This document shows positions 1,773 through 9,315 of a DNA stretch of 64,000 bases, in pieces; positions within the stretch are counted from its first letter, which is position 1, and each line of letters starts with the position of its first letter. The stretch is from Paramoeba atlantica (lineage: Eukaryota > Protista > Discosea). The position numbers were made by a program, and so were the translations under genes. The notes under the pieces were generated by a model, which had not been told where the DNA came from, did no database searches, and saw only the letters and a program-made list of their open reading frames with translations. The DNA is taken from contig CDRNVI010000185.1 of NCBI GenBank assembly GCA_977017575.1, forward strand, positions 62,001 to 126,000. Direction: 5' to 3'.

Positions 1773-3225
1773 GCCATAGGGATCCAGGGGGCAATCGCCA
1801 GAGTGGCGGCCAACTTCACAGGCACGCTGAAGGTCTGGGCGTACCTGGATGACGTCACCTTTGCTGGTGAACCCAAGGTTTGCGCGGAAGCCCTAGAGGC
1901 CCTCCGCGAGGAGCTGAAGCATCTTGGGCTACGGTTAAATACTGCTAAATGCAAAGTAGCTACCAGACGCGAGGACCTCTTCTCCGAGTTCTCCGGATCT
2001 CGCATGGTCCACTCCCCCGGGGGGGTCAAATTACTGGGGGCCTTCATCGGGGTGTCGGAGGCTAGGGAGGAAGAATGGGTGCTTTCCAAGGCCCCCAAGG
2101 TAATCTCCTTCCTGGGGAAACTCAAGGACATTAGCAGGCAATGCGCCTTGCCCCTTTTAAGACTCTGTGGGAGTCCTCGATGGAACTACATCGTAAGGAC
2201 CCACGACCCCCCGGTCACTAAAGTGGCCAATACCCAGGTCGACAAAGCCGTCCTGGCATGTGCTGAGGCCTTGCTCGGGGGGATGGGCTCCTTGGGAAAA
2301 ACGCCGTTCTCCAATAACCTTTTCACGGCAGATTTCCTGGGGACCATCCCCTTCGCGCACAAGGCGGAAGACATGCAGGCCAAGGCGAAGAACGCCCTAC
2401 AGGGCCGACCCCAAGGCATGTCAGCCAAGGAACAGCGGCGCAACCTCTGTGAGGCCGCGTTGGGGAAAGCCCCGACGGCCACCCAACTGGTCTGCATGCG
2501 ACAGACCCAGAACATTCACTCCACTAAGTGGATGAACGCATGGCCCAACAGGCCGGAGTATTACATGCGGGACCCGCAGTGGGAGACTGCGGCCCGTCTC
2601 CGGTACTTGGTCGCCCCCACCTCGGAACCTGAGCTCCAGTGCGTGTGCGGTGCAACCCTCCGCAATGAGGAGTTTTGCGTACACGCACTGGATTGCAAAA
2701 AGGTTAAGGGGAAGACCCAGGCCTCCCGCCACAAGGAGGTCAAGGAAACCTTTCGAAACCTTCTTGTGCAGTATGGTTTCAAACCGGACCTACACGAACC
2801 GAGGTTCGACAATGGACGGGGGCCCGACATATGCTTCCAGCTGGGACGGAAGACTGCCCTAGTTGATGTCACCGTGGTGAACCCATTGGCCCCGTCCTAC
2901 GTGGAGAAGGAGGCCGCAGAGCCCTCTCATACCCTGAGGATGGCAGAGGCCAACAAGCGGCGCTCACACGATGAGATGGCGACCGCCCGAGGGATGGAAT
3001 TTTACCCCTTGGCATTCACCACGTATGGGATCCCGGGCCCAGAGACTTTGAACTTCCTAACCAAGGTGGCCCGGGCTCACTCATCCGACAAGAACGGATG
3101 CATGTCCCACCTTCTGATGGCCATAGGGGTGGCCATCCAGAAAGGTAATGCCCAGATTGTACAGGCGGCAGTACAGGACTGGTACCGCCGCGGGGTACGA
3201 GGCTAGCTGGGCGATGGGATTAGGG

Positions 3226-3259
<34 letters not shown>
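1773..3259 (+). mobile_element. 5'-truncated CRE-clade non-LTR retrotransposon, family B
   Basis: RT C-terminal part (AYLDDVT), CCHC knuckle (CVC...HALDC), RLE motif (GPDICF..LVDVT), very short 3' UTR, A34 tail at 3226-3259. Confidence 0.9.
1803..3206 (+). CDS. RT-RLE polyprotein, C-terminal part (family B)
   Basis: 467-aa ORF with YLDD and a PD-(D/E)xK-type endonuclease motif. Confidence 0.88.
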   Translation: MAANFTGTLKVWAYLDDVTFAGEPKVCAEALEALREELKHLGLRLNTAKCKVATRREDLFSEFSGSRMVHSPGGVKLLGAFIGVSEAREEEWVLSKAPKVISFLGKLKDISRQCALPLLRLCGSPRWNYIVRTHDPPVTKVANTQVDKAVLACAEALLGGMGSLGKTPFSNNLFTADFLGTIPFAHKAEDMQAKAKNALQGRPQGMSAKEQRRNLCEAALGKAPTATQLVCMRQTQNIHSTKWMNAWPNRPEYYMRDPQWETAARLRYLVAPTSEPELQCVCGATLRNEEFCVHALDCKKVKGKTQASRHKEVKETFRNLLVQYGFKPDLHEPRFDNGRGPDICFQLGRKTALVDVTVVNPLAPSYVEKEAAEPSHTLRMAEANKRRSHDEMATARGMEFYPLAFTTYGIPGPETLNFLTKVARAHSSDKNGCMSHLLMAIGVAIQKGNAQIVQAAVQDWYRRGVRG

Positions 3260-3262
<3 letters not shown>

Positions 3263-3381
3263 GTATACCCCCCCCCAATGGACCTACTTGGTTCGTCTAC
3301 TGGGTCAAAATATAGAGGCAATGCCGCGTTTCATACTTCTCCCCCCTTATTAATCGCAAAAAAAAAAAAAAAAAAAAAAAA
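3260..3381 (+). mobile_element. 98-nt 3'-terminal fragment (tail C) plus A24
   Basis: Near-identical to about 13225-13318, 13604-13701 and 18591-18687. Confidence 0.85.
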
Positions 3382-3964
3382 CTCCTTTCACGAGACCAAG
3401 CGCGAAACGATCTCCTAACAGATCTGAACGTGACGCTAATGCGTTCTCAAGCCAGGATGATGGTTTCGCGCATCCGCGTAGAGGACCCAGCGGATCCTTT
3501 GGTAGAGGCTTAAGCCTCTACTGACAGTCCAGTTTCAGCACGAAGACGCCATAATATCCAGGACGGGTGCTGGCCGGGTCGACAGAGTCTATGCTCACGC
3601 CTAGCCCGCGAGGGCTAGGTACCCCAAGTGAGGTAGTACACGGGTAGTGAATCTCCTCCCCGTCGGCCAGCATCCTGTTTCGCGACCGTGTCGCTGTCGA
3701 CACAGGCCCGCGCCTGCGCCCTCCCGTATAACAAGGGAAGGGTCCACAAGTCAGGCCGTGGAGAGGTCGAAAGACCCGGTCCGGAACGCGCGAATGGTTG
3801 AGGAGCCGCCTGCAGGCCGGGTGAGGCGAAGCTGAGGGAGACCTTACCCCCCTGAAAAGTTGAAAAGTTGGGTAGGGGAAAGCAGGAAAGTAGGGAGAAA
3901 GGTGGGAAAAGTATGTCAAGAGGTGAGAAAGAGGAGAAAGAGAGAGAAAAATTTTCTTTATTTG

Positions 3965-3995
<31 letters not shown>
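3382..3995 (+). mobile_element. Heavily 5'-truncated family-A element (variant A4) plus A28
   Basis: Translates to LLSRDQARNDLLTDLNVTLMRSQARMMVSRIRVEDPADPLVEA*, homologous to the A1/A2/A3 C-termini; followed by the structured 3' UTR module. Confidence 0.88.
3566..3797 (+). ncRNA. Structured 3'-UTR RNA module, copy 1
   Basis: Conserved across copies with compensatory changes; GCGA and GAAA tetraloop hairpins. Confidence 0.75.
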
Positions 3996-4011
3996 CGATA
4001 AAGATTTAAAA

Positions 4012-4046
4012 TTTAACGATAAAGATACAGTTTCTGTACCTTGTTG
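4012..4046 (+). ncRNA. Spliced-leader exon sequence at the 5' end of element A1
   Basis: tttaacgataaagatacagtttctgtaccttgttg contains the kinetoplastid SL core GATACAGTTTCTGTAC and terminal TTG; it is not followed by GT. Confidence 0.88.
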
Positions 4047-4087
4047 AAATTTTTTTACGCAGTATTCTCTCGGGGCCCAGCTCTTTT

Positions 4088-7000
4088 ATGACGCAAACCA
4101 ATACTCCTCAGAGCCCCGCACGCTCGAACGAGGACCACCCCTCATCCCATATGAGTGCAAAGGAAGGAACTCTCAGCGTAGGCGCTCTCGCCGACGAAGA
4201 ACGTGCCCACTCCCTCGGCAGTTGGGACCAATTCCAAGGAAACAAGCATTTGATTCGCGCTGTCAGCACATACGACGAACAACTCTACACTACACCAATC
4301 CCGGAGAATATTCCTAAGGAATGGTTGGAACGCGCACGTCACATCTCCCAGGAAAAGGAAACCCCAGACACGGGCCACGTAGAGGCCGAAGACGAGGAGA
4401 TGCAGCACTGTGGAGTGAGAAGGCAGAAAATTACTCACGAGGCTACACCCACATCAAAGATCCCCGATGAAACTCGGACGCTCAAATCCGCAGTGAAGGA
4501 TGCTCTTTCCCACCAAGGTCGAAACACTTCCCCATCGAAAGGAGTGACCAAAGCGGACTCGCGCTCGTCAAGGCGAACACCGGAGCCCCGGACATATTTC
4601 TCTTCACCGCGACACGCCGCAAACCAAAATAACTTCGCTGAAAAGACACAAACAAGAGAAGAGACTCGGGAATGTCCGGCCATGGGATGCACTTGGAGAA
4701 GTCTGCCGCACGGAGGGTCTTGGCAAGCGTTTTATAACCACGTCGCGTGTCGCCACGGAAACGGAGTTCCCGCTACCTGGTGGGATGCAGAAGGCCGATT
4801 TCTTTGCAACTTATGCGGGCGCCATTATGACATCAACAAAAGGGAAGCTCATCCACAAGCCTGCAAAGGGAACGTTGCGAACCCCCAAATCCCATCGCGC
4901 GCAGCACACTCGAGCGTCCCAAGCCACCTTCCGGGGACTCAAACTCATCACTCTGAACTTCCCTCGCTATCCTCTATCTGCACGCTGCGCCTGAACACTT
5001 GCAAGGACGTACCTCCACGTTGCCGTCAACTGTGGGGAGAAATTATCACCAAAGCAGCCCAAAACGCAGTCACCGAAAACTCTACAGCCGCGTGGACCCT
5101 ATTCGCCATGCTCCCCAAGTGCTTACTACCCGCCCCACACCGAGGAGGACGTAAGAACCACACAACTTACGCATCATACGTCCAGAAGTGCATGAACCGA
5201 TGGCTCGCGCAAGATTATGTCTCCCTATGGAATGAAGCAGTAGACAACGCACTCAAGAAACAATCTGTAGCCCCTACAACCGTTCACGACGAAGAGGAAA
5301 AGGCAGCTATCCGAGCAGAGCTTCTAGCTCGACAAGGCGAGTACTCTAGGGGTATGGCTGCACTCACGGCGGATGCTATGGCCCCTGACGACGAAGATAC
5401 ACTCCTCAAACTTCAGAGCAAGCACCCGCCCCGACATCCAGACAGTGACATCATCGACTATACGCCTCCGCCCACAGCGCCCCTAATAATGGATGAACGC
5501 GTGGTAGCGAAAACTATCAAGAGCTTTCACCGGGGATCCTCGTCCGGAACCATGGGTTTACGACCCGAGCACTTGCAAGCTGTACTCCTGGCGCACGTAG
5601 ATAACACCGTGAAACCCCTTACTGCCCTTAAAAACCTCGTGAATCATCTACTAGCCGGGAAAGCACCCCTAGAGGTACAACCATATTTTGCGGGAGCCAG
5701 ACTTTGCGCGCTTAAAAAGGGCGAAAATGACGTCCGCCCCATAGCAGCGGGAGAAACGATACGTCGATTGGTAAGCAAAGCGGCTTGCAATGCAGTGAGG
5801 AGCAAAGCCAGGGAATTTTTTAAGGGACTACAGTTCGGCGTCGCGACACCGGCCGGTTCGGAACGAATAATTCACACTTGCCGGCACGCAATGACAATTC
5901 ATACGGACAACCCCGACATGGTATTATGTAAAGTCGACCTAAGCAACGCATTCAACAACGTTAGCAGAGCAACTTTCTTGAAACTTGTAGGCGATCATTT
6001 TCCGGAATTGTTCCCCTGGGCTAGCTGGTGCTATACGACAACTAGTGCTTTGACCTATCGTTACCACACACTCCTTTCGGATGAAGGCGTCCAACAGGGC
6101 GATCCCCTGGGACCACTTTTCTTTTCACTGGTCTCCTTGGAACTTGCAAAAGAAATCTATCACCAGGCCGACCTGGACTTGCAGCTATGGTACCTAGACG
6201 ACGGGATTCTCATTGGCAGGGCAGAAGACGTCAGGAATTCGTTGGATACAATCGCCAGAGTAGGTCCGCGATGGGGCCTATATCTGAACATGTCCAAGTG
6301 CGAAATAATCACCCCCCCTGCCTCGGCTAACGTTGTAACCATATTTCCGGACATACCCGACGCCAAAATAAACGTGTGCGGTAACTTTAGTGTCCTAGGA
6401 AGCCCAATTGGGTCCCCTGAGTACTGTACTGAATATCTGCTGACACACGCGGTTGAGCCCGCCGAAATGGCCCTTGATGCCATAACCAGAATCCGGGACC
6501 CCCAGGTAGCCATGGCGCTAATTCGACAATGTGCTGGATTCTGCAAATTGGTACATGCTCTACGAACGACGCCCCCGCAATCAGTTATGAACCTCTGCAA
6601 GCGGCTCGACGACTTCCTAATGCACGCGGTCGAATCCACTCTATGTCCTTTGCCTCCCTCCGCACGCGCCCAAATTCAGCGCTTGAAAAGACACGGAGGT
6701 TTCGGTTTAAAATCGTCGACCGTGCACGCATCCTCCGCTTACGCCTCCTCTGTAGTTTTCGCGGCGGCCACGGACTCATGGGATGCTTCAGAAGTGGAGG
6801 GCTTTCTACAATCGATTGAAGACGTGAACTCGAAAGTTGGTATCAGTCTACTCGACTCAAACGGACTCGTGCGTTCCATCCCGCGCCATAAATGTGAAGA
6901 ACTCTCCCCCAAAGCTCGCTTCACCAAGAGATCTCGCGAGGGAGAAACCAGACATCCCTTTGAACCCGCAAATCCGCCTTCCCTTCCTCGTGACCGCGCA

Positions 7001-7954
7001 TTGCCTCATTCCGAAGACTTTCCACACGATACAAACCCCCTTTACGCATCCGAAGATTGCGTTGACGCGGATCCACCCGACTGGGCAAGTAATAGCGTCC
7101 CCCGCCAAAAAGACATAAGTTACGCGATCTCTGCCACAGAGTTCTCGCACGCATATGAAAACGCCGACGCCCGGACTCGCGCACGCTGGGCTTCTCAGTG
7201 TGGTAAAGGAGCAAGCAGCTGGGCGTTCGTAACTCCTTCCAGAGACACGGGCCACGCCTTTAACCCCACAGAATTCCGCATCCTATCCAGCTGGTGGTTA
7301 GGTGTGCCCGTGTACGGGGAAGAAGGTACATGTCCCAAGGGGAACTGCACACTCCCATTGGACATACACGGCGATCACGCTCTCACATGCAAGCACGGGG
7401 ACGGTATCATCGGCCGTCACAACGCCTTGGCCGATCACTTTGCCGATACTTGCAGTAACGCACGCCTAGCTCCCCAACGGGAAAAAAGCCTCGGGAACCG
7501 GGGCCCCGGAGGCGCTCTGACTAGACCCGGGGACGTCTTCCTTCCGAGTCTCTTCCTCGGGAAACCTATCGTGCTTGACTTCGCGGTCACTCACGCCCAG
7601 CAATCTAAATACACGGACACAGTCCGAAATGCTAGCTGGGTGGCCGCGGGGTCCTTCGCAGAGCATTATGCCTCAGAGCAGAAAGTCCGACAACGCCGTG
7701 AATCTGAAGATGCCGGAAGCGATTTCACAGCTATGGTGGTCGAGAGCTATGGCTCTTGGAGTGCCAGTGCTTTAGCCGTTCTCCGGAAGGTTGGAGAACG
7801 AAGGGCAAAAGCGTCCAACGGTATCTTGACAGACGAGGCCTCTACGCTCCGTCTCGTGACCGACATGAACGTAACATTGATGCGTTGCCAGGCACGCATG
7901 ATGATTACGCGCCTGCCGGCTGTGGACCCCTTGCCCCCTTTAATCGAGCAATAG
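4088..7954 (+). CDS. 1288-aa LsmAD-ZnF-RT-CCHC-RLE polyprotein
   Basis: N-terminal C2H2 and CCHC fingers; RT motifs (VRPIAAGE, VDLSNAFN, GVQQGDPLGP, WYLDDG); HALTC/RHN knuckle; RPGDVF..LDFAVT endonuclease. Confidence 0.95.
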   Translation: MTQTNTPQSPARSNEDHPSSHMSAKEGTLSVGALADEERAHSLGSWDQFQGNKHLIRAVSTYDEQLYTTPIPENIPKEWLERARHISQEKETPDTGHVEAEDEEMQHCGVRRQKITHEATPTSKIPDETRTLKSAVKDALSHQGRNTSPSKGVTKADSRSSRRTPEPRTYFSSPRHAANQNNFAEKTQTREETRECPAMGCTWRSLPHGGSWQAFYNHVACRHGNGVPATWWDAEGRFLCNLCGRHYDINKREAHPQACKGNVANPQIPSRAAHSSVPSHLPGTQTHHSELPSLSSICTLRLNTCKDVPPRCRQLWGEIITKAAQNAVTENSTAAWTLFAMLPKCLLPAPHRGGRKNHTTYASYVQKCMNRWLAQDYVSLWNEAVDNALKKQSVAPTTVHDEEEKAAIRAELLARQGEYSRGMAALTADAMAPDDEDTLLKLQSKHPPRHPDSDIIDYTPPPTAPLIMDERVVAKTIKSFHRGSSSGTMGLRPEHLQAVLLAHVDNTVKPLTALKNLVNHLLAGKAPLEVQPYFAGARLCALKKGENDVRPIAAGETIRRLVSKAACNAVRSKAREFFKGLQFGVATPAGSERIIHTCRHAMTIHTDNPDMVLCKVDLSNAFNNVSRATFLKLVGDHFPELFPWASWCYTTTSALTYRYHTLLSDEGVQQGDPLGPLFFSLVSLELAKEIYHQADLDLQLWYLDDGILIGRAEDVRNSLDTIARVGPRWGLYLNMSKCEIITPPASANVVTIFPDIPDAKINVCGNFSVLGSPIGSPEYCTEYLLTHAVEPAEMALDAITRIRDPQVAMALIRQCAGFCKLVHALRTTPPQSVMNLCKRLDDFLMHAVESTLCPLPPSARAQIQRLKRHGGFGLKSSTVHASSAYASSVVFAAATDSWDASEVEGFLQSIEDVNSKVGISLLDSNGLVRSIPRHKCEELSPKARFTKRSREGETRHPFEPANPPSLPRDRALPHSEDFPHDTNPLYASEDCVDADPPDWASNSVPRQKDISYAISATEFSHAYENADARTRARWASQCGKGASSWAFVTPSRDTGHAFNPTEFRILSSWWLGVPVYGEEGTCPKGNCTLPLDIHGDHALTCKHGDGIIGRHNALADHFADTCSNARLAPQREKSLGNRGPGGALTRPGDVFLPSLFLGKPIVLDFAVTHAQQSKYTDTVRNASWVAAGSFAEHYASEQKVRQRRESEDAGSDFTAMVVESYGSWSASALAVLRKVGERRAKASNGILTDEASTLRLVTDMNVTLMRCQARMMITRLPAVDPLPPLIEQ
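4217..4423 (+). other. Ataxin-2/Pbp1-like LsmAD domain inside the A1 ORF (aa ~44-112)
   Basis: WDQFQGNKHLIRAVSTYDEQLYTTPI...ARHISQE...H...DEEMQHCGVRR against the recalled LsmAD pattern WDQF..N..lFgv.StydE.lYTt.l...riA.Eie...H...DEEdkySgV.R. Confidence 0.8.
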
Positions 7955-8010
7955 CACGATGACGGATGTGCAAGATGGGCCGCTCAGCCGGAACTCGAAC
8001 AGCTGGTCCG

Positions 8011-8247
8011 GATGCTGGTCGATGCCGGCAGGGTCTATGCTCACGCCTAGTCCGCCAGGGCTAGGTACTCCAAGTGAGGTAGGACATGGGTAGGGAACTT
8101 TGTTCCTCCCCGTCGGCCAGCATCATGCTCCGCGACCGTGCCGCTGTCGGCACAGGCCCATTGCTTGCGCCCTCTCGTACAACAAGAGAAGGGTTAACAA
8201 GGTAAGCTGGGAGAGGTCGAAAGACCCGGTCCGGAACGCGCGAATGG
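8011..8247 (+). ncRNA. Structured 3'-UTR RNA module, divergent copy 2 (A1)
   Basis: Shows compensatory pairs relative to the other copies. Confidence 0.75.
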
Positions 8248-8510
8248 TTCGGGAAAAGTCTGCCCCTCCTAACCGAGGGAGACCTTACCCTCCCTGGAAA
8301 GCTGGTAAGATTGGTAAGGGGAAGTGGGTAAGATGGGAAAGCATGTATTTGCTAGTTATATATTTTGCTGGTTTTCAAAATGGGGGGAAGTGAGGGAAAG
8401 AAGTTGAGCAAGTAGGAAAGTAAGTGAGAAAGTCATACCGTACATACATATATAAAATTAGAACTCGTACTCTTCCCCCCCTATTATCTGCAAAAAAAAA
8501 AAAAAAAAAA

Positions 8511-8629
8511 TAGATGGTTTCTTTGAGGGGTGGAGATAAGGGAGAGAAGCGGGCGAAGTTGATAAGGGCGAAGTAAAGTAAGTAGGAAAGTAAGTAAGAA
8601 AGTGATACCAAAAAAAAAAAAAAAAAAAA
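8511..8629 (+). mobile_element. Purine-rich RNA 3'-end fragment (tail D) plus A20
   Basis: Core is identical to 9398-9457; lies between two poly(A) tracts. Confidence 0.7.
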
Positions 8630-9315
8630 TCTTTAACGATAAAGATACAGTTTCTGTACCTTGTTGAATTATTTCCCCTTTTCTTCCATACACCATCTTC
8701 CAGACCATGGGAGGGCACCCCCCTCAAATACACTCCTTTTTGTCGGCATCCCCCTTCCCCGTCTCGTCCCATCACCCCCCTGCGCCGCATCCCCCCACAT
8801 CACCCTCCCTCCGCAGTGCGCTTGCCCCCCTGTTGTGTTTCTCTCTCGCGTCCCCCACCCCCGTGTCAGCAGCCAAAAGTATACAATACTTGCTCACGGG
8901 GTGGGGGCAGAGTTCCTGGCAGATGGGCCCGTGCTTCGCCTCCTCTCGCCCCTGCGTCAGTCCCCCCGTGTCTCTCTCCGCGCTCTTCTCCCTCGGCGTG
9001 ACGACGTCTTTGTGTTTCGTGGCCTCCACGTCTCCCACCCTCGTACGGCAACCAAAAGTATTTATTACTGCTAACGGGGTGGGAGCGGAGGTGCAGGACC
9101 ATACGGGCCTGGGTGCATGCGGATCGGTGAGTGGGGTAGGGAGTGAGGGAAGGGAAGTACGAGAGGGCTAAGAGGAGTAGGTGTGGAAAGTATGGGGAGT
9201 AAGGGAAAGCGAAGGGCCGTAAGTGTGGAAATTGTGGAAAAGTTGGACTCCATACATAAAAAGTTAGACTCAATACTATTCCCCCCAATTATTTGCAAAA
9301 AAAAAAAAAAAAAAA
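8630..9315 (+). mobile_element. SL-capped, polyadenylated non-autonomous retro-copy (~690 nt)
   Basis: SL exon 8632-8666, no RT coding, internal ~42-nt imperfect direct repeat (8870-8912 / 9049-9090), CCCCCC-AATTATTTGC-A19 end. Confidence 0.8.
8632..8666 (+). ncRNA. Spliced-leader exon sequence, second copy
   Basis: Identical 35-mer to 4012-4046; followed by AATT, not GT. Confidence 0.88.

Follow-up and report, generated by a model that had tools for sequence, protein, structure and literature searches.

An ataxin-2-type LsmAD domain in retrotransposons of a kinetoplastid: origin, conservation and a possible role as dock for the helicase DHH1

Ataxin-2, the gene of which plays a part in SCA2 and ALS, has LsmAD as its signature and most conserved domain. 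In the stretch of DNA analysed here (the window, 64,000 nt at its full length), the N-terminus of a retrotransposon protein was claimed, from the letters alone, to carry such a domain, which raises the questions of whether this domain is genuine, from where it was acquired, and what it might do for a retroelement. The element and its immediate surroundings are organized as follows:

3968..3996, forward strand: poly(A) tail of an upstream retro-copy, just before the head of the LsmAD-bearing element (read in the sequence)
4015..4046, forward strand: spliced-leader-like 5' leader, core CAGTTTCTGTAC (repeated 32-mer)
4088..7954, forward strand: retrotransposon ORF (LsmAD, linker, zinc finger, RT, RLE), 1288 aa, ATG start, intact, single
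4193..4423, forward strand: LsmAD domain, aa 36-112 (Pfam, BLASTP against host PBP1, profile-profile match, conservation 0.58-0.62)
4424..4669, forward strand: hypervariable linker after LsmAD (among-family pairwise identity 0.09-0.23)
4670..4870, forward strand: Cys/His zinc-finger region, common to the families (family HMM 119.7 bits)
5525..6787, forward strand: reverse transcriptase region, RVT_1 core at aa 543-742 (Pfam and family HMM)
7091..7927, forward strand: C-terminal Cys/His motif and putative restriction-enzyme-like endonuclease region, PGD ... LDFAVTH (family HMM 480 bits)
7955..8512, forward strand: 3' UTR, with the poly(A) end at 8493-8512

Residues 44-112 as quoted in the original prediction (nt 4217-4423) are identical to the ORF translation, and the order given there, in which LsmAD precedes zinc finger, RT and RLE within one ORF, was likewise read in 4088-7954. 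A Pfam scan of this whole ORF returned only RVT_1 (E 2e-15, aa 543-742) and LsmAD (PF06741); the endonuclease region 7091..7927 matched no Pfam model, and its Cys/His cluster (aa ~1082-1101) and the PGD ... LDFAVTH motif were read in the ORF sequence and are conserved across families. The 32-mer leader of 4015-4046 is found again at 8635-8666, where it heads another retro-copy (three matches within the window, with none expected by chance), and the same leader also precedes other element families elsewhere in the genome. Element copies in the window are joined poly(A)-to-head, and the copies other than that at 4088-7954 lack 5' parts in the comparison with the family HMMs. Altogether, the LsmAD elements make up a large and diverse set of non-LTR retrotransposons that start with a spliced-leader sequence, end in poly(A) and encode a putative restriction-like endonuclease at the C-terminus.

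By description, this organization resembles that of CRE1, CRE2, SLACS and CZAR, i.e., a single long ORF that runs from N-terminal Cys/His finger(s) over the RT to a C-terminal RLE (putative in the elements studied here), and the CRE clade also shares the poly(A) tail, a kinetoplastid host and the connection to the spliced leader (SL). For Bodo saltans, which is probably the host here, the presence of CRE has been reported (PMC12278014). Despite this similarity there are differences: the published CRE architecture consists only of ZF, RT, RLE, repeats and poly(A), whereas the elements studied here possess an additional LsmAD (PMC12278014). Furthermore, CRE elements occupy a fixed insertion site inside SL RNA genes, whereas the window copy has a full SL-like leader and is part of a poly(A)-to-head chain; it is not situated at the CRE site, as no flanks of an SL RNA gene were seen and the upstream sequence is the poly(A) of a retro-copy.

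Concerning the identity of the domain, PF06741 matches aa 60-104 of the window ORF (profile positions 5-53 of 72) with 21.9 bits in the whole ORF and with 27.1-27.3 bits if aa 31-121 are taken in isolation, such that, at a Pfam gathering cut-off of 25 bits, the window copy alone is borderline. The value below the cut-off in the whole-ORF context would be in line with a chance similarity, or with a chimera produced by assembly or gene calling; the homology results, however, refute the former. PF06741 is matched individually by the representatives of all 17 element families (best E 8.6e-9), with 28.9-33.3 bits for other families in the Pfam scans, and the top score among element loci in the genome search is 37.5 bits (profile positions 5-71 of 72). 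In hhalign, the element profile aligns with 30 canonical LsmADs over 88 columns, i.e., the whole domain (probability 99.7%, E 2.7e-27), and in BLASTP the element LsmAD shares 45% identity over 92 aa with the PBP1 of the host (E 9e-17); the LsmAD tree described below points in the same direction. The element LsmADs are characterized by the motifs H-x2-G-S-W-D-Q-F, N, STYDE-x-LYTTPIP, the element-specific TPDTG, and a closing acidic EE..H/F-S-x-V. A protein search with the element profile yielded 1020 proteins at E<=1e-3, and those non-element matches that were scanned with Pfam all bear an LsmAD, except for a bacterial Ig-repeat false positive (P0143). In agreement with the original prediction, a genuine LsmAD domain occupies ORF residues ~36-112.

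A chimeric origin is contradicted equally clearly. Identical or near-identical copies of the full-length window element exist on other contigs, the same layout from LsmAD to RLE is found in many other element families, and a second assembly repeats the contiguity of LsmAD and RT in four of its proteins (P0004, P0272, P0281, P0286), while a contig of 1141 nt from an independent run covers window positions 4061-5201 unbroken. The part 4088-4430, the continuity of which with the RT ORF the claim had presupposed, is hence contiguous with it in all of these sources, and chance similarity or chimera as an explanation of the LsmAD-RT ORF is virtually excluded.

With regard to structure, neither host PBP1 nor the element profile, used as queries against the PDB sequences, led to an LsmAD structure or an LsmAD complex. 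The AF2 model of the isolated domain (pLDDT 74, pTM 0.29) contains short helices only and is not compactly folded; in a fold search with it, LsmAD clusters rank first in the Atlas, but with TM values of 0.30-0.39, which are weak.

Host domains are known from other non-LTR retrotransposons, e.g., esterase or PHD in ORF1 of CR1/L2-type elements, the Ulp1 protease in NeSL, and RNase H in plant L1. The LsmAD elements resemble these captures in that a host module was joined to a retrotransposon protein and later conserved, whereas they differ from them in that the source of the module is an mRNP regulator and the module by itself neither acts as an enzyme nor binds nucleic acids (PMC11898529). No paper reporting an LsmAD-RT fusion was found in the literature search, and a 2026 survey of ataxin-2 chimeras gives no reverse transcriptase among the partners, such that the assertion that no LsmAD-bearing retrotransposon was known holds for the literature searched; it is the LsmAD that appears new, the pickup of host domains by retrotransposons being established already. 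Among the best 150 of the 1020 profile matches, RT-linked LsmADs come only from an ENA assembly that includes the same species, and the PBP1 in it is 100% identical to host PBP1 over 208 aa. A word-indexed search with the element N-terminus returned 12 ENA proteins only, and one with aa 1-230 of host PBP1 gave no match and is not informative on relatives. The RT relatives found are metagenome and sponge proteins, and a search of the Atlas for the combination of RT and RLE features led to RVT_1 clusters only, which do not aid in assigning the element to a clade.

The PBP1 of the host consists of an SM-ATX domain (aa 2-74), an LsmAD (aa 148-212) and a PAM2 motif (LNPNARAFTP), and shares with the element LsmAD also the residues just before the Pfam boundary, S-H-x2-G-S-W-D-Q-F. 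In the element-profile search of 1.84 billion proteins, host PBP1, in truncated form, is the best protein with both SM-ATX and LsmAD (76 bits), whereas generic ataxin-2 reaches at most 57 bits. In the LsmAD tree, 17 elements and P0156 form one clade (98/96), and these together with host PBP1 and P0145 are split from 71 other eukaryotic LsmADs (100/96), with diplonemid ataxin-2 as the next branch beyond. These results show that the kinetoplastid host lineage supplied the PBP1/ataxin-2 gene from which the element LsmAD was copied, as the proposed capture of a host module implied; since the element LsmADs form one clade, a single capture is the simplest reading.

The similarity to ataxin-2 and kinetoplastid PBP1 extends over the whole length of the domain and is closest to host PBP1. 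In contrast to these proteins, the element lacks the LSm domain (SM-ATX), PAM2 and the long disordered tail, and its LsmAD is part of a fusion protein with zinc finger, RT and endonuclease; in place of the canonical mid-domain N-x-H-x3-E-R-G, the elements have the shorter TPDTG motif. SM-ATX (PF14438) was absent in Pfam scans of the window ORF and six other element ORFs, and motif scans of the element ORFs detected neither the PAM2 core, apart from one loose pattern match in L044, nor the MKT1-binding HNPY motif. The capture thus left out the LSm domain and the PAM2 motif of PBP1.

Non-LTR elements acquire host sequence by template switching, and the LsmAD might accordingly be a functionless passenger picked up from PBP1 mRNA, the more so as other fusions occur elsewhere in the RT clade (ubiquitin, Prim-Pol, RNase H, MLLE). 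The conservation of the domain makes this very improbable. LsmAD-bearing element loci number more than 150, and about 73 of them keep open full-length frames (>=1150 aa). The domain is found in at least 17 element families and in two RT lineages with ~23% shared RT identity, and between the L034 lineage and the window element the LsmAD is ~50% identical, the RT only 23%. Among families, pairwise identity of the LsmAD is 0.58-0.62, similar to that of RT and RLE, in comparison with 0.08-0.23 in the flanks, and 17 residues are invariant while the flanking linkers have diverged to ~10% identity. Sequence conservation therefore indicates that the element LsmAD is kept under selection as tightly as the RT and the endonuclease. 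In these elements, LsmAD is set apart from LSm domain, PAM2 and disordered regions and is nevertheless selected in dozens of lineages, which argues for an autonomous function; the elements thus constitute a simple system for finding its partner. The sole RNA-labelled run of the species contained no match to the window stretch, which does not prove the element silent. A third strong LsmAD locus of the genome (C163), with a canonical LsmAD in split frames, was rejected as a member of the element families, as no RT, ZnF or RLE is situated nearby.

A testable candidate for the partner is the DEAD-box helicase DHH1/DDX6. According to reviews citing Nonhoff 2007 (PMC12898128, PMC12345631), the LSm/LsmAD region of ataxin-2 binds DDX6. 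The host DHH1 orthologue was identified (L046, E 5e-173 to yeast Dhh1), and its complex model with the element LsmAD reached ipSAE values of 0.79, 0.81 and 0.79, against 0.00 for the best of three controls, with a partner pLDDT of at least 68 and a contact agreement between runs of at least 83%. The same mark is reached by 39 of 65 solved and by 2 of 126 unrelated pairs in a eukaryote benchmark, which does not cover disordered or predicted chains; the model comes from one structure-prediction run and may reflect complexes of the DDX6-peptide or eIF4AIII-Btz-like kind that are already solved. The predicted interface contains 14 of the 17 invariant element residues (Fisher p 0.0009). In the predicted pose, the LsmAD stretches over RecA1 and, on RecA2, the 'patch 3' surface, and its contacts take in S280, N282 and R283 of DHH1, which correspond to the patch 3 residues S292, N294 and R295 of yeast Dhh1. 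Patch 3 is used by Pat1 and yeast Edc3 (PMC3783180), with which the predicted contacts would be shared. More generally, the element domain resembles EDC3, Pat1, LSM14/Scd6, 4E-T and GIGYF in that, according to the model, an intrinsically poorly structured stretch wraps around part of DDX6/Dhh1; unlike these short-motif partners, however, the LsmAD is predicted to leave both patch 1, the FDF pocket, and patch 2 free and to cover RecA1. None of the patch 1 equivalents (L046 positions 251, 253, 257, 260, 261, 264, 265, 268 and 397) is part of the predicted interface. The idea that W-D-Q-F-x2-N mimics an FDF motif in the FDF pocket of DDX6 was rejected, because the predicted interface avoids both patches.

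That the element LsmAD is a protein-protein adaptor binding host DHH1/DDX6 has, on the basis of this model, about even odds. Counting against it, LsmAD alone is not compact by NMR/SAXS (PMC11898529), and its deletion in the fly has mild effects only on target binding (PMC7946432). If the adaptor exists, the ORF protein could bind its own mRNA in cis during synthesis and bring DHH1 onto the same molecule; DHH1 would withdraw the element mRNA from translation into a stable, repressed mRNP, and target-primed reverse transcription would then use this mRNP as its template. Ty1, Ty3 and some RNA viruses depend on Dhh1 or P-bodies, and the scheme would be a built-in counterpart of that dependence. 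Overall, a captured and selected LsmAD with a DHH1-recruiting mechanism is the best explanation, with a probability of roughly 0.55. The full form of the idea, a self-sufficient DHH1/DDX6 dock taken over by the retrotransposons of a free-living kinetoplastid to load the helicase on their own mRNA, is more tentative and falls somewhat short of even chances. If it is true, the elements are natural 'minimal constructs' that reveal the function of the most conserved ataxin-2 domain, and a retroelement hard-wires its own reliance on the machinery of translational repression. The capture would suggest a way in which SL-capped, polyadenylated elements switch their RNA from messenger to reverse-transcription template.

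That the LsmAD steers the element RNP to granules or poly(A) RNPs, as had been proposed, we only infer: the link to DDX6/Dhh1 gained in silico support from the complex model (ipSAE 0.79, controls 0.00), whereas a direct role at poly(A) or PABP did not. Ataxin-2 is linked to PABP via PAM2 and to LSM12 via its LSm domain (PMC11166328), and such a direct role is not supported because the element has neither.

Alternatively, the LsmAD might dock the ORF protein to the PBP1-LSM12-MKT1-XAC1-PABP complex of the host, which would boost the element's own mRNA and bring the RT close to the poly(A) tail, the starting point of reverse transcription. Trypanosome mRNAs become more stable and are translated more strongly through this complex, and in T. 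brucei reporter expression goes up with tethered PBP1, LSM12, MKT1 or PABP (bioRxiv 10.1101/2020.03.02.973057). The derivation of the domain from PBP1 and the poly(A)-to-head joining of copies fit such docking, as does the MLLE/PABC domain, a poly(A)-mRNP module, in two metagenome relatives from the RT clade (P0023, P0024); binding to an LSm domain in trans is also conceivable, as LSmAD reportedly aids the LSm domain (PMC11898529). Nevertheless, this role is rather unlikely, given that the region bound by Mkt1 in yeast is a different one (aa 491-549; PMC12345631) and that LSm, PAM2 and HNPY are missing from the elements.

The DHH1 complex model is equally compatible with a decoy, in which the element LsmAD competes with host PBP1 for a partner, DHH1 or another, and blunts the silencing or degradation of element RNA instead of recruiting the partner to the benefit of the element. 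Elements and host PBP1 share the interface-forming residues, element copies are many, and short retro-copies consisting only of leader, LsmAD and poly(A) exist in a tandem array. In every intact family, however, the LsmAD is in cis with RT and RLE, and it moved between RT lineages within the ORF, such that a cis-acting role fits better and a decoy is quite improbable. The short copies themselves seem to have arisen incidentally through premature polyadenylation and to have been duplicated afterwards.

The window contains a single full-length copy of an RLE-type (restriction-like endonuclease) non-LTR retrotransposon, with an uninterrupted ORF of 1288 aa, ATG start included, at 4088-7954 (+); all other copies there are 5'-truncated. 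A Pfam scan of this ORF yields two families, RVT_1 (aa 543-742, E 2e-15) and LsmAD (PF06741, aa 60-104, corresponding to profile positions 5-53 of 72), and residues 44-112 (nt 4217-4423), quoted in the original prediction of an ataxin-2-type domain, match our reading of the ORF exactly.

Features of the (+)-strand element (window positions, or aa of the ORF)
3968-3996: poly(A) of the upstream copy (sequence read)
4015-4046: spliced-leader (SL)-like leader (0 expected by chance)
aa 36-112: LsmAD (Pfam, family alignment, profile-profile comparison)
4424-4669: hypervariable linker (block identity among families)
4670-4870: Cys/His finger region
5525-6787: reverse transcriptase (RT)
7091-7927: Cys/His and endonuclease region
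3' UTR and poly(A), the latter at 8493-8512

Poly(A)-to-head stacking is evident at 8513-8666, where a very short retro-copy (3'-UTR tail of ~97 nt, poly(A) at 8610-8629) separates this poly(A) from the SL-like leader that follows at 8635-8666.

Taken singly, the window LsmAD is borderline, since its score (21.9 bits within the whole ORF, 27.3 bits for aa 31-121 alone) straddles the curated PF06741 cut-off of 25 bits. That the segment is a true LsmAD is borne out by the family: all 17 fetched representatives of different element families match PF06741 singly and no other family (best E 8.6e-9), and a profile-profile comparison of their alignment with 30 canonical LsmADs gives a probability of 99.7% (E 2.7e-27) over 88 columns, extending from residues that precede W-D-Q-F as far as the acidic D-E-E..S-x-V motif at the end. 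Invariant in the 17 N-termini are H12, G15, W17, Q19, F20, N23, L26, S31, Y38, T39, T40, P43, T63, D65, G67, E74, and E75. Structural comparison points weakly in the same direction: LsmAD clusters rank first in a shape search, yet with a TM of just 0.30-0.39, and the AF2 model of the isolated domain (pLDDT 74, pTM 0.29) consists of short helices without a compact fold, in agreement with NMR/SAXS results, according to which LSmAD alone is poorly folded (PMC11898529).

The predicted contiguity of LsmAD and RT is found again in identical copies at other loci of the genome (G000; 248 contigs, 45.7 Mb; window at C185:62001-126000), in proteins of 1278-1330 aa from a second assembly, and in a contig of an independent run covering window 4061-5201. 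More than 150 loci match the first 201 residues of the ORF (identity 38%-100%), about 73 of those listed within open frames of at least 1150 aa, and the PF06741 profile also finds more than 150 matches, with many RT-sized frames reaching 29-37 bits over profile positions 5-71 of 72. These copy counts are upper estimates, because host genes are doubled on separate contigs at near-identical scores (PBP1 on C44/C66; DEAD-box genes on C39/C40, C26/C42, and C21/C33) and the window element with its surroundings recurs 22 kb upstream on C185; the assembly seems to be partly haplotype-resolved or duplicated. A tandem array of at least 17 units with a 2.28-kb period (L049, G000:C22:141000-146600, and C21:6-11633), each unit composed of an SL leader, a 5' fragment that encodes LsmAD and terminates in poly(A), and then RLE tails lacking their 5' part, looks like a chain of retro-copies amplified via tandem duplication.

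PF06741 finds its two best genomic matches, at 53.4 bits, in a 994-aa frame on C44 and an 859-aa frame on C66. The C66 product (823 aa; SM-ATX at aa 2-74, LsmAD at aa 148-212, PAM2 LNPNARAFTP) is a normal PBP1/ataxin-2, and the near-identical copy on C44 is presumably the other haplotype. The element N-terminus shares 45% identity with this host PBP1 in a 92-residue BLASTP alignment (E 9e-17) that includes residues upstream of the Pfam boundary. When the element profile was searched against 1.84 billion representative proteins, 1020 matched at E<=1e-3; the top ~22 are element-type proteins with the domain N-terminal, all from ENA, followed in single-domain score, among the matches listed, by P0145 from a 1.6-kb metagenome contig (83 bits), host PBP1 in a truncated database copy (76), P0156 (62), and generic ataxin-2 (at most 57). 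In a maximum-likelihood tree of 91 LsmADs, the 17 element domains and P0156 form one clade (98/96), and these together with host PBP1 and P0145 are split at 100/96 from the remaining 71, of which diplonemid ataxin-2 (Lacrimia, Diplonema) branches first. Tree, profile search, and BLASTP thus trace the element domain to a kinetoplastid-lineage PBP1, in keeping with the predicted origin from host ataxin-2; one capture is the simplest reading. Its timing within kinetoplastids cannot be dated, as trypanosomatid PBP1s were not identifiable among the best 150 of the 1020 matches.

The LsmAD of P0145 (350 aa, JGI; LsmAD at aa 260-350), which is nearest to host PBP1, combines an element-like upstream motif (F-L-N-E-E-A-A-H-N-R-G) with a host-type middle (N-I-Q-H-A-V-D-R-G) and is preceded by an N-terminal part of unrelated sequence; P0145 may represent an intermediate or a further bodonid fusion. 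A third strong genomic locus (L027, G000:C163:165500-172500, ~3150-4040 (-); 43 bits by PF06741 search) encodes the second half of the domain in canonical form (N-x-H-x2-E-E-R-G ... D-E-E-D-L-Y-S-G-V), within a lysine-rich frame, and the first half in a different frame. Neither RT, zinc finger, nor RLE lies close by, and the locus may represent a second LsmAD gene of the host, interrupted by an intron or frameshift, or DNA from a different organism.

The organism is probably Bodo saltans, since host PBP1 is 100% identical across 208 residues to P0149 (213 aa), which resembles UniProt A0A0S4IS39, a protein that we take to be from B. saltans. As described in PMC12898128, A0A0S4IS39 has the same length and architecture as P0149. 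The SL core of the element, CAGTTTCTGTAC, fits a kinetoplastid, and CRE, INGI, TATE, and VIPER elements are reported for B. saltans (PMC12278014). The CRE architecture described there comprises zinc finger, RT, RLE, repeats, and poly(A) and lacks LsmAD, and the window copy lies elsewhere than at the CRE insertion site. In the full-text literature, LsmAD combined with retrotransposon retrieved unrelated plant papers only, and neither reverse transcriptase nor transposon is mentioned in a survey of ataxin-2 chimeras from 2026. Among the best 150 of the 1020 matches, RT-linked LsmADs come solely from an assembly of the same species, and the long non-element matches have LsmAD, some of them together with SM-ATX, and lack RT. 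The fusion is an instance of host-domain capture by a non-LTR retrotransposon, a known phenomenon.

Pairwise identity in blocks of 20 residues, averaged over 17 full-length families, amounts to 0.58-0.62 within the LsmAD core, equal to that of the RT and endonuclease blocks, and to 0.08-0.23 in the regions flanking LsmAD. The element L034 (G000:C4:260500-267500; ORF 2300-5869 (-)), whose RT is ~23% identical to the window RT and whose ORF lacks the finger region common to window-type elements, carries an LsmAD ~50% identical to that of the window, with element-type features and a position inside the element clade. This mismatch and the conflict between RT and LsmAD trees for L040/L044 indicate that the module has moved between retrotransposon lineages. 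Such movement, too, argues that LsmAD is useful to the elements; a rival explanation regards it as a functionless passenger.

Of PBP1, the elements have retained LsmAD only: Pfam and motif scans of their ORFs revealed no SM-ATX domain, PAM2 core, or MKT1-type HNPY motif, and with LSm and PAM2 absent the window element is not a member of the ataxin-2 family. According to published work, ataxin-2 binds LSM12 by its LSm domain and PABP by PAM2, i.e., outside LsmAD (PMC11166328), and yeast Pbp1 binds Mkt1 by a separate region (PMC12345631); these findings count against a second rival, in which LsmAD would dock the element onto the PBP1-LSM12-MKT1-PABP activator complex. For the LSm/LSmAD region, this leaves DDX6/Dhh1 as the reported partner (Nonhoff 2007, cited by PMC12898128 and PMC12345631).

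The host DHH1 (L046:343-1566, 408 aa; E 5e-173 to yeast Dhh1, 1e-165 to human DDX6) was modeled from aa 30-408 with the element segment, giving ipSAE values of 0.79, 0.81, and 0.79 in three runs (best of three controls 0.00), a partner pLDDT of at least 68, and contacts agreeing by at least 83% between runs. The same mark is reached by 51/78 solved microbial complexes versus 2/108 mismatches and by 39/65 solved eukaryotic pairs versus 2/126 unrelated pairs, a calibration that does not extend to disordered chains. The model thus supports binding of LsmAD to DHH1. The predicted interface comprises segment residues 3-62 and 74-76, in which 14 of the 17 residues invariant among the families fall (Fisher p 0.0009), and on DHH1 residues 110-171 of RecA1 and 255-330 of RecA2, including S292/N294/R295 of patch 3 (yeast numbering, i.e., L046 residue + 12, verified on the S-V-N-R and H-C-L-N-T-L strings). 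It contains no residue of patch 1 (the FDF pocket) or patch 2, such that mimicry of an FDF motif by W-D-Q-F is unsupported. A PDB sequence search found no LsmAD complex, which makes it unlikely that the model echoes one; an echo of other helicase-peptide complexes is possible. Of the originally predicted link to DDX6 and PABP, the DDX6 part thus gains support from the model (ipSAE 0.79), and the PABP part does not, PAM2 being absent from the element ORFs.

We prefer, at roughly even odds, a reading in which LsmAD would load DHH1 onto the element's own mRNP, shifting its RNA from translation to a stable repressed state, from which it would be used for reverse transcription; the remaining rival is that LsmAD acts as a decoy. 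Ty1, Ty3, and some RNA viruses depend on Dhh1/P-bodies, and the proposed role of DHH1 parallels this dependence.

Other domain fusions exist among relatives of the window RT. Two JGI metagenome proteins, P0023 (aa 1557-1620) and P0024 (aa 1079-1143), possess an MLLE/PABC domain of poly(A)-binding protein (E 3e-12 and 5e-13) C-terminal to an RT that is 47-49% identical to that of the window. This RT clade would thereby have joined with a poly(A)-mRNP module other than LsmAD as well, although the two proteins could be gene-call chimeras on short contigs. Three N-terminal ubiquitin repeats are found in P0037, an N-terminal Prim-Pol in P0039, and a C-terminal RNase H in P0013. Among non-ataxin proteins of other organisms, P0137, P0141, and P0153 combine PDZ with two LsmADs (P0137 and P0141 also with RRM), and P0157 has three LsmADs and a protein kinase; beyond ataxin-2, LsmAD thus serves as a portable module more frequently than one would expect from its name.
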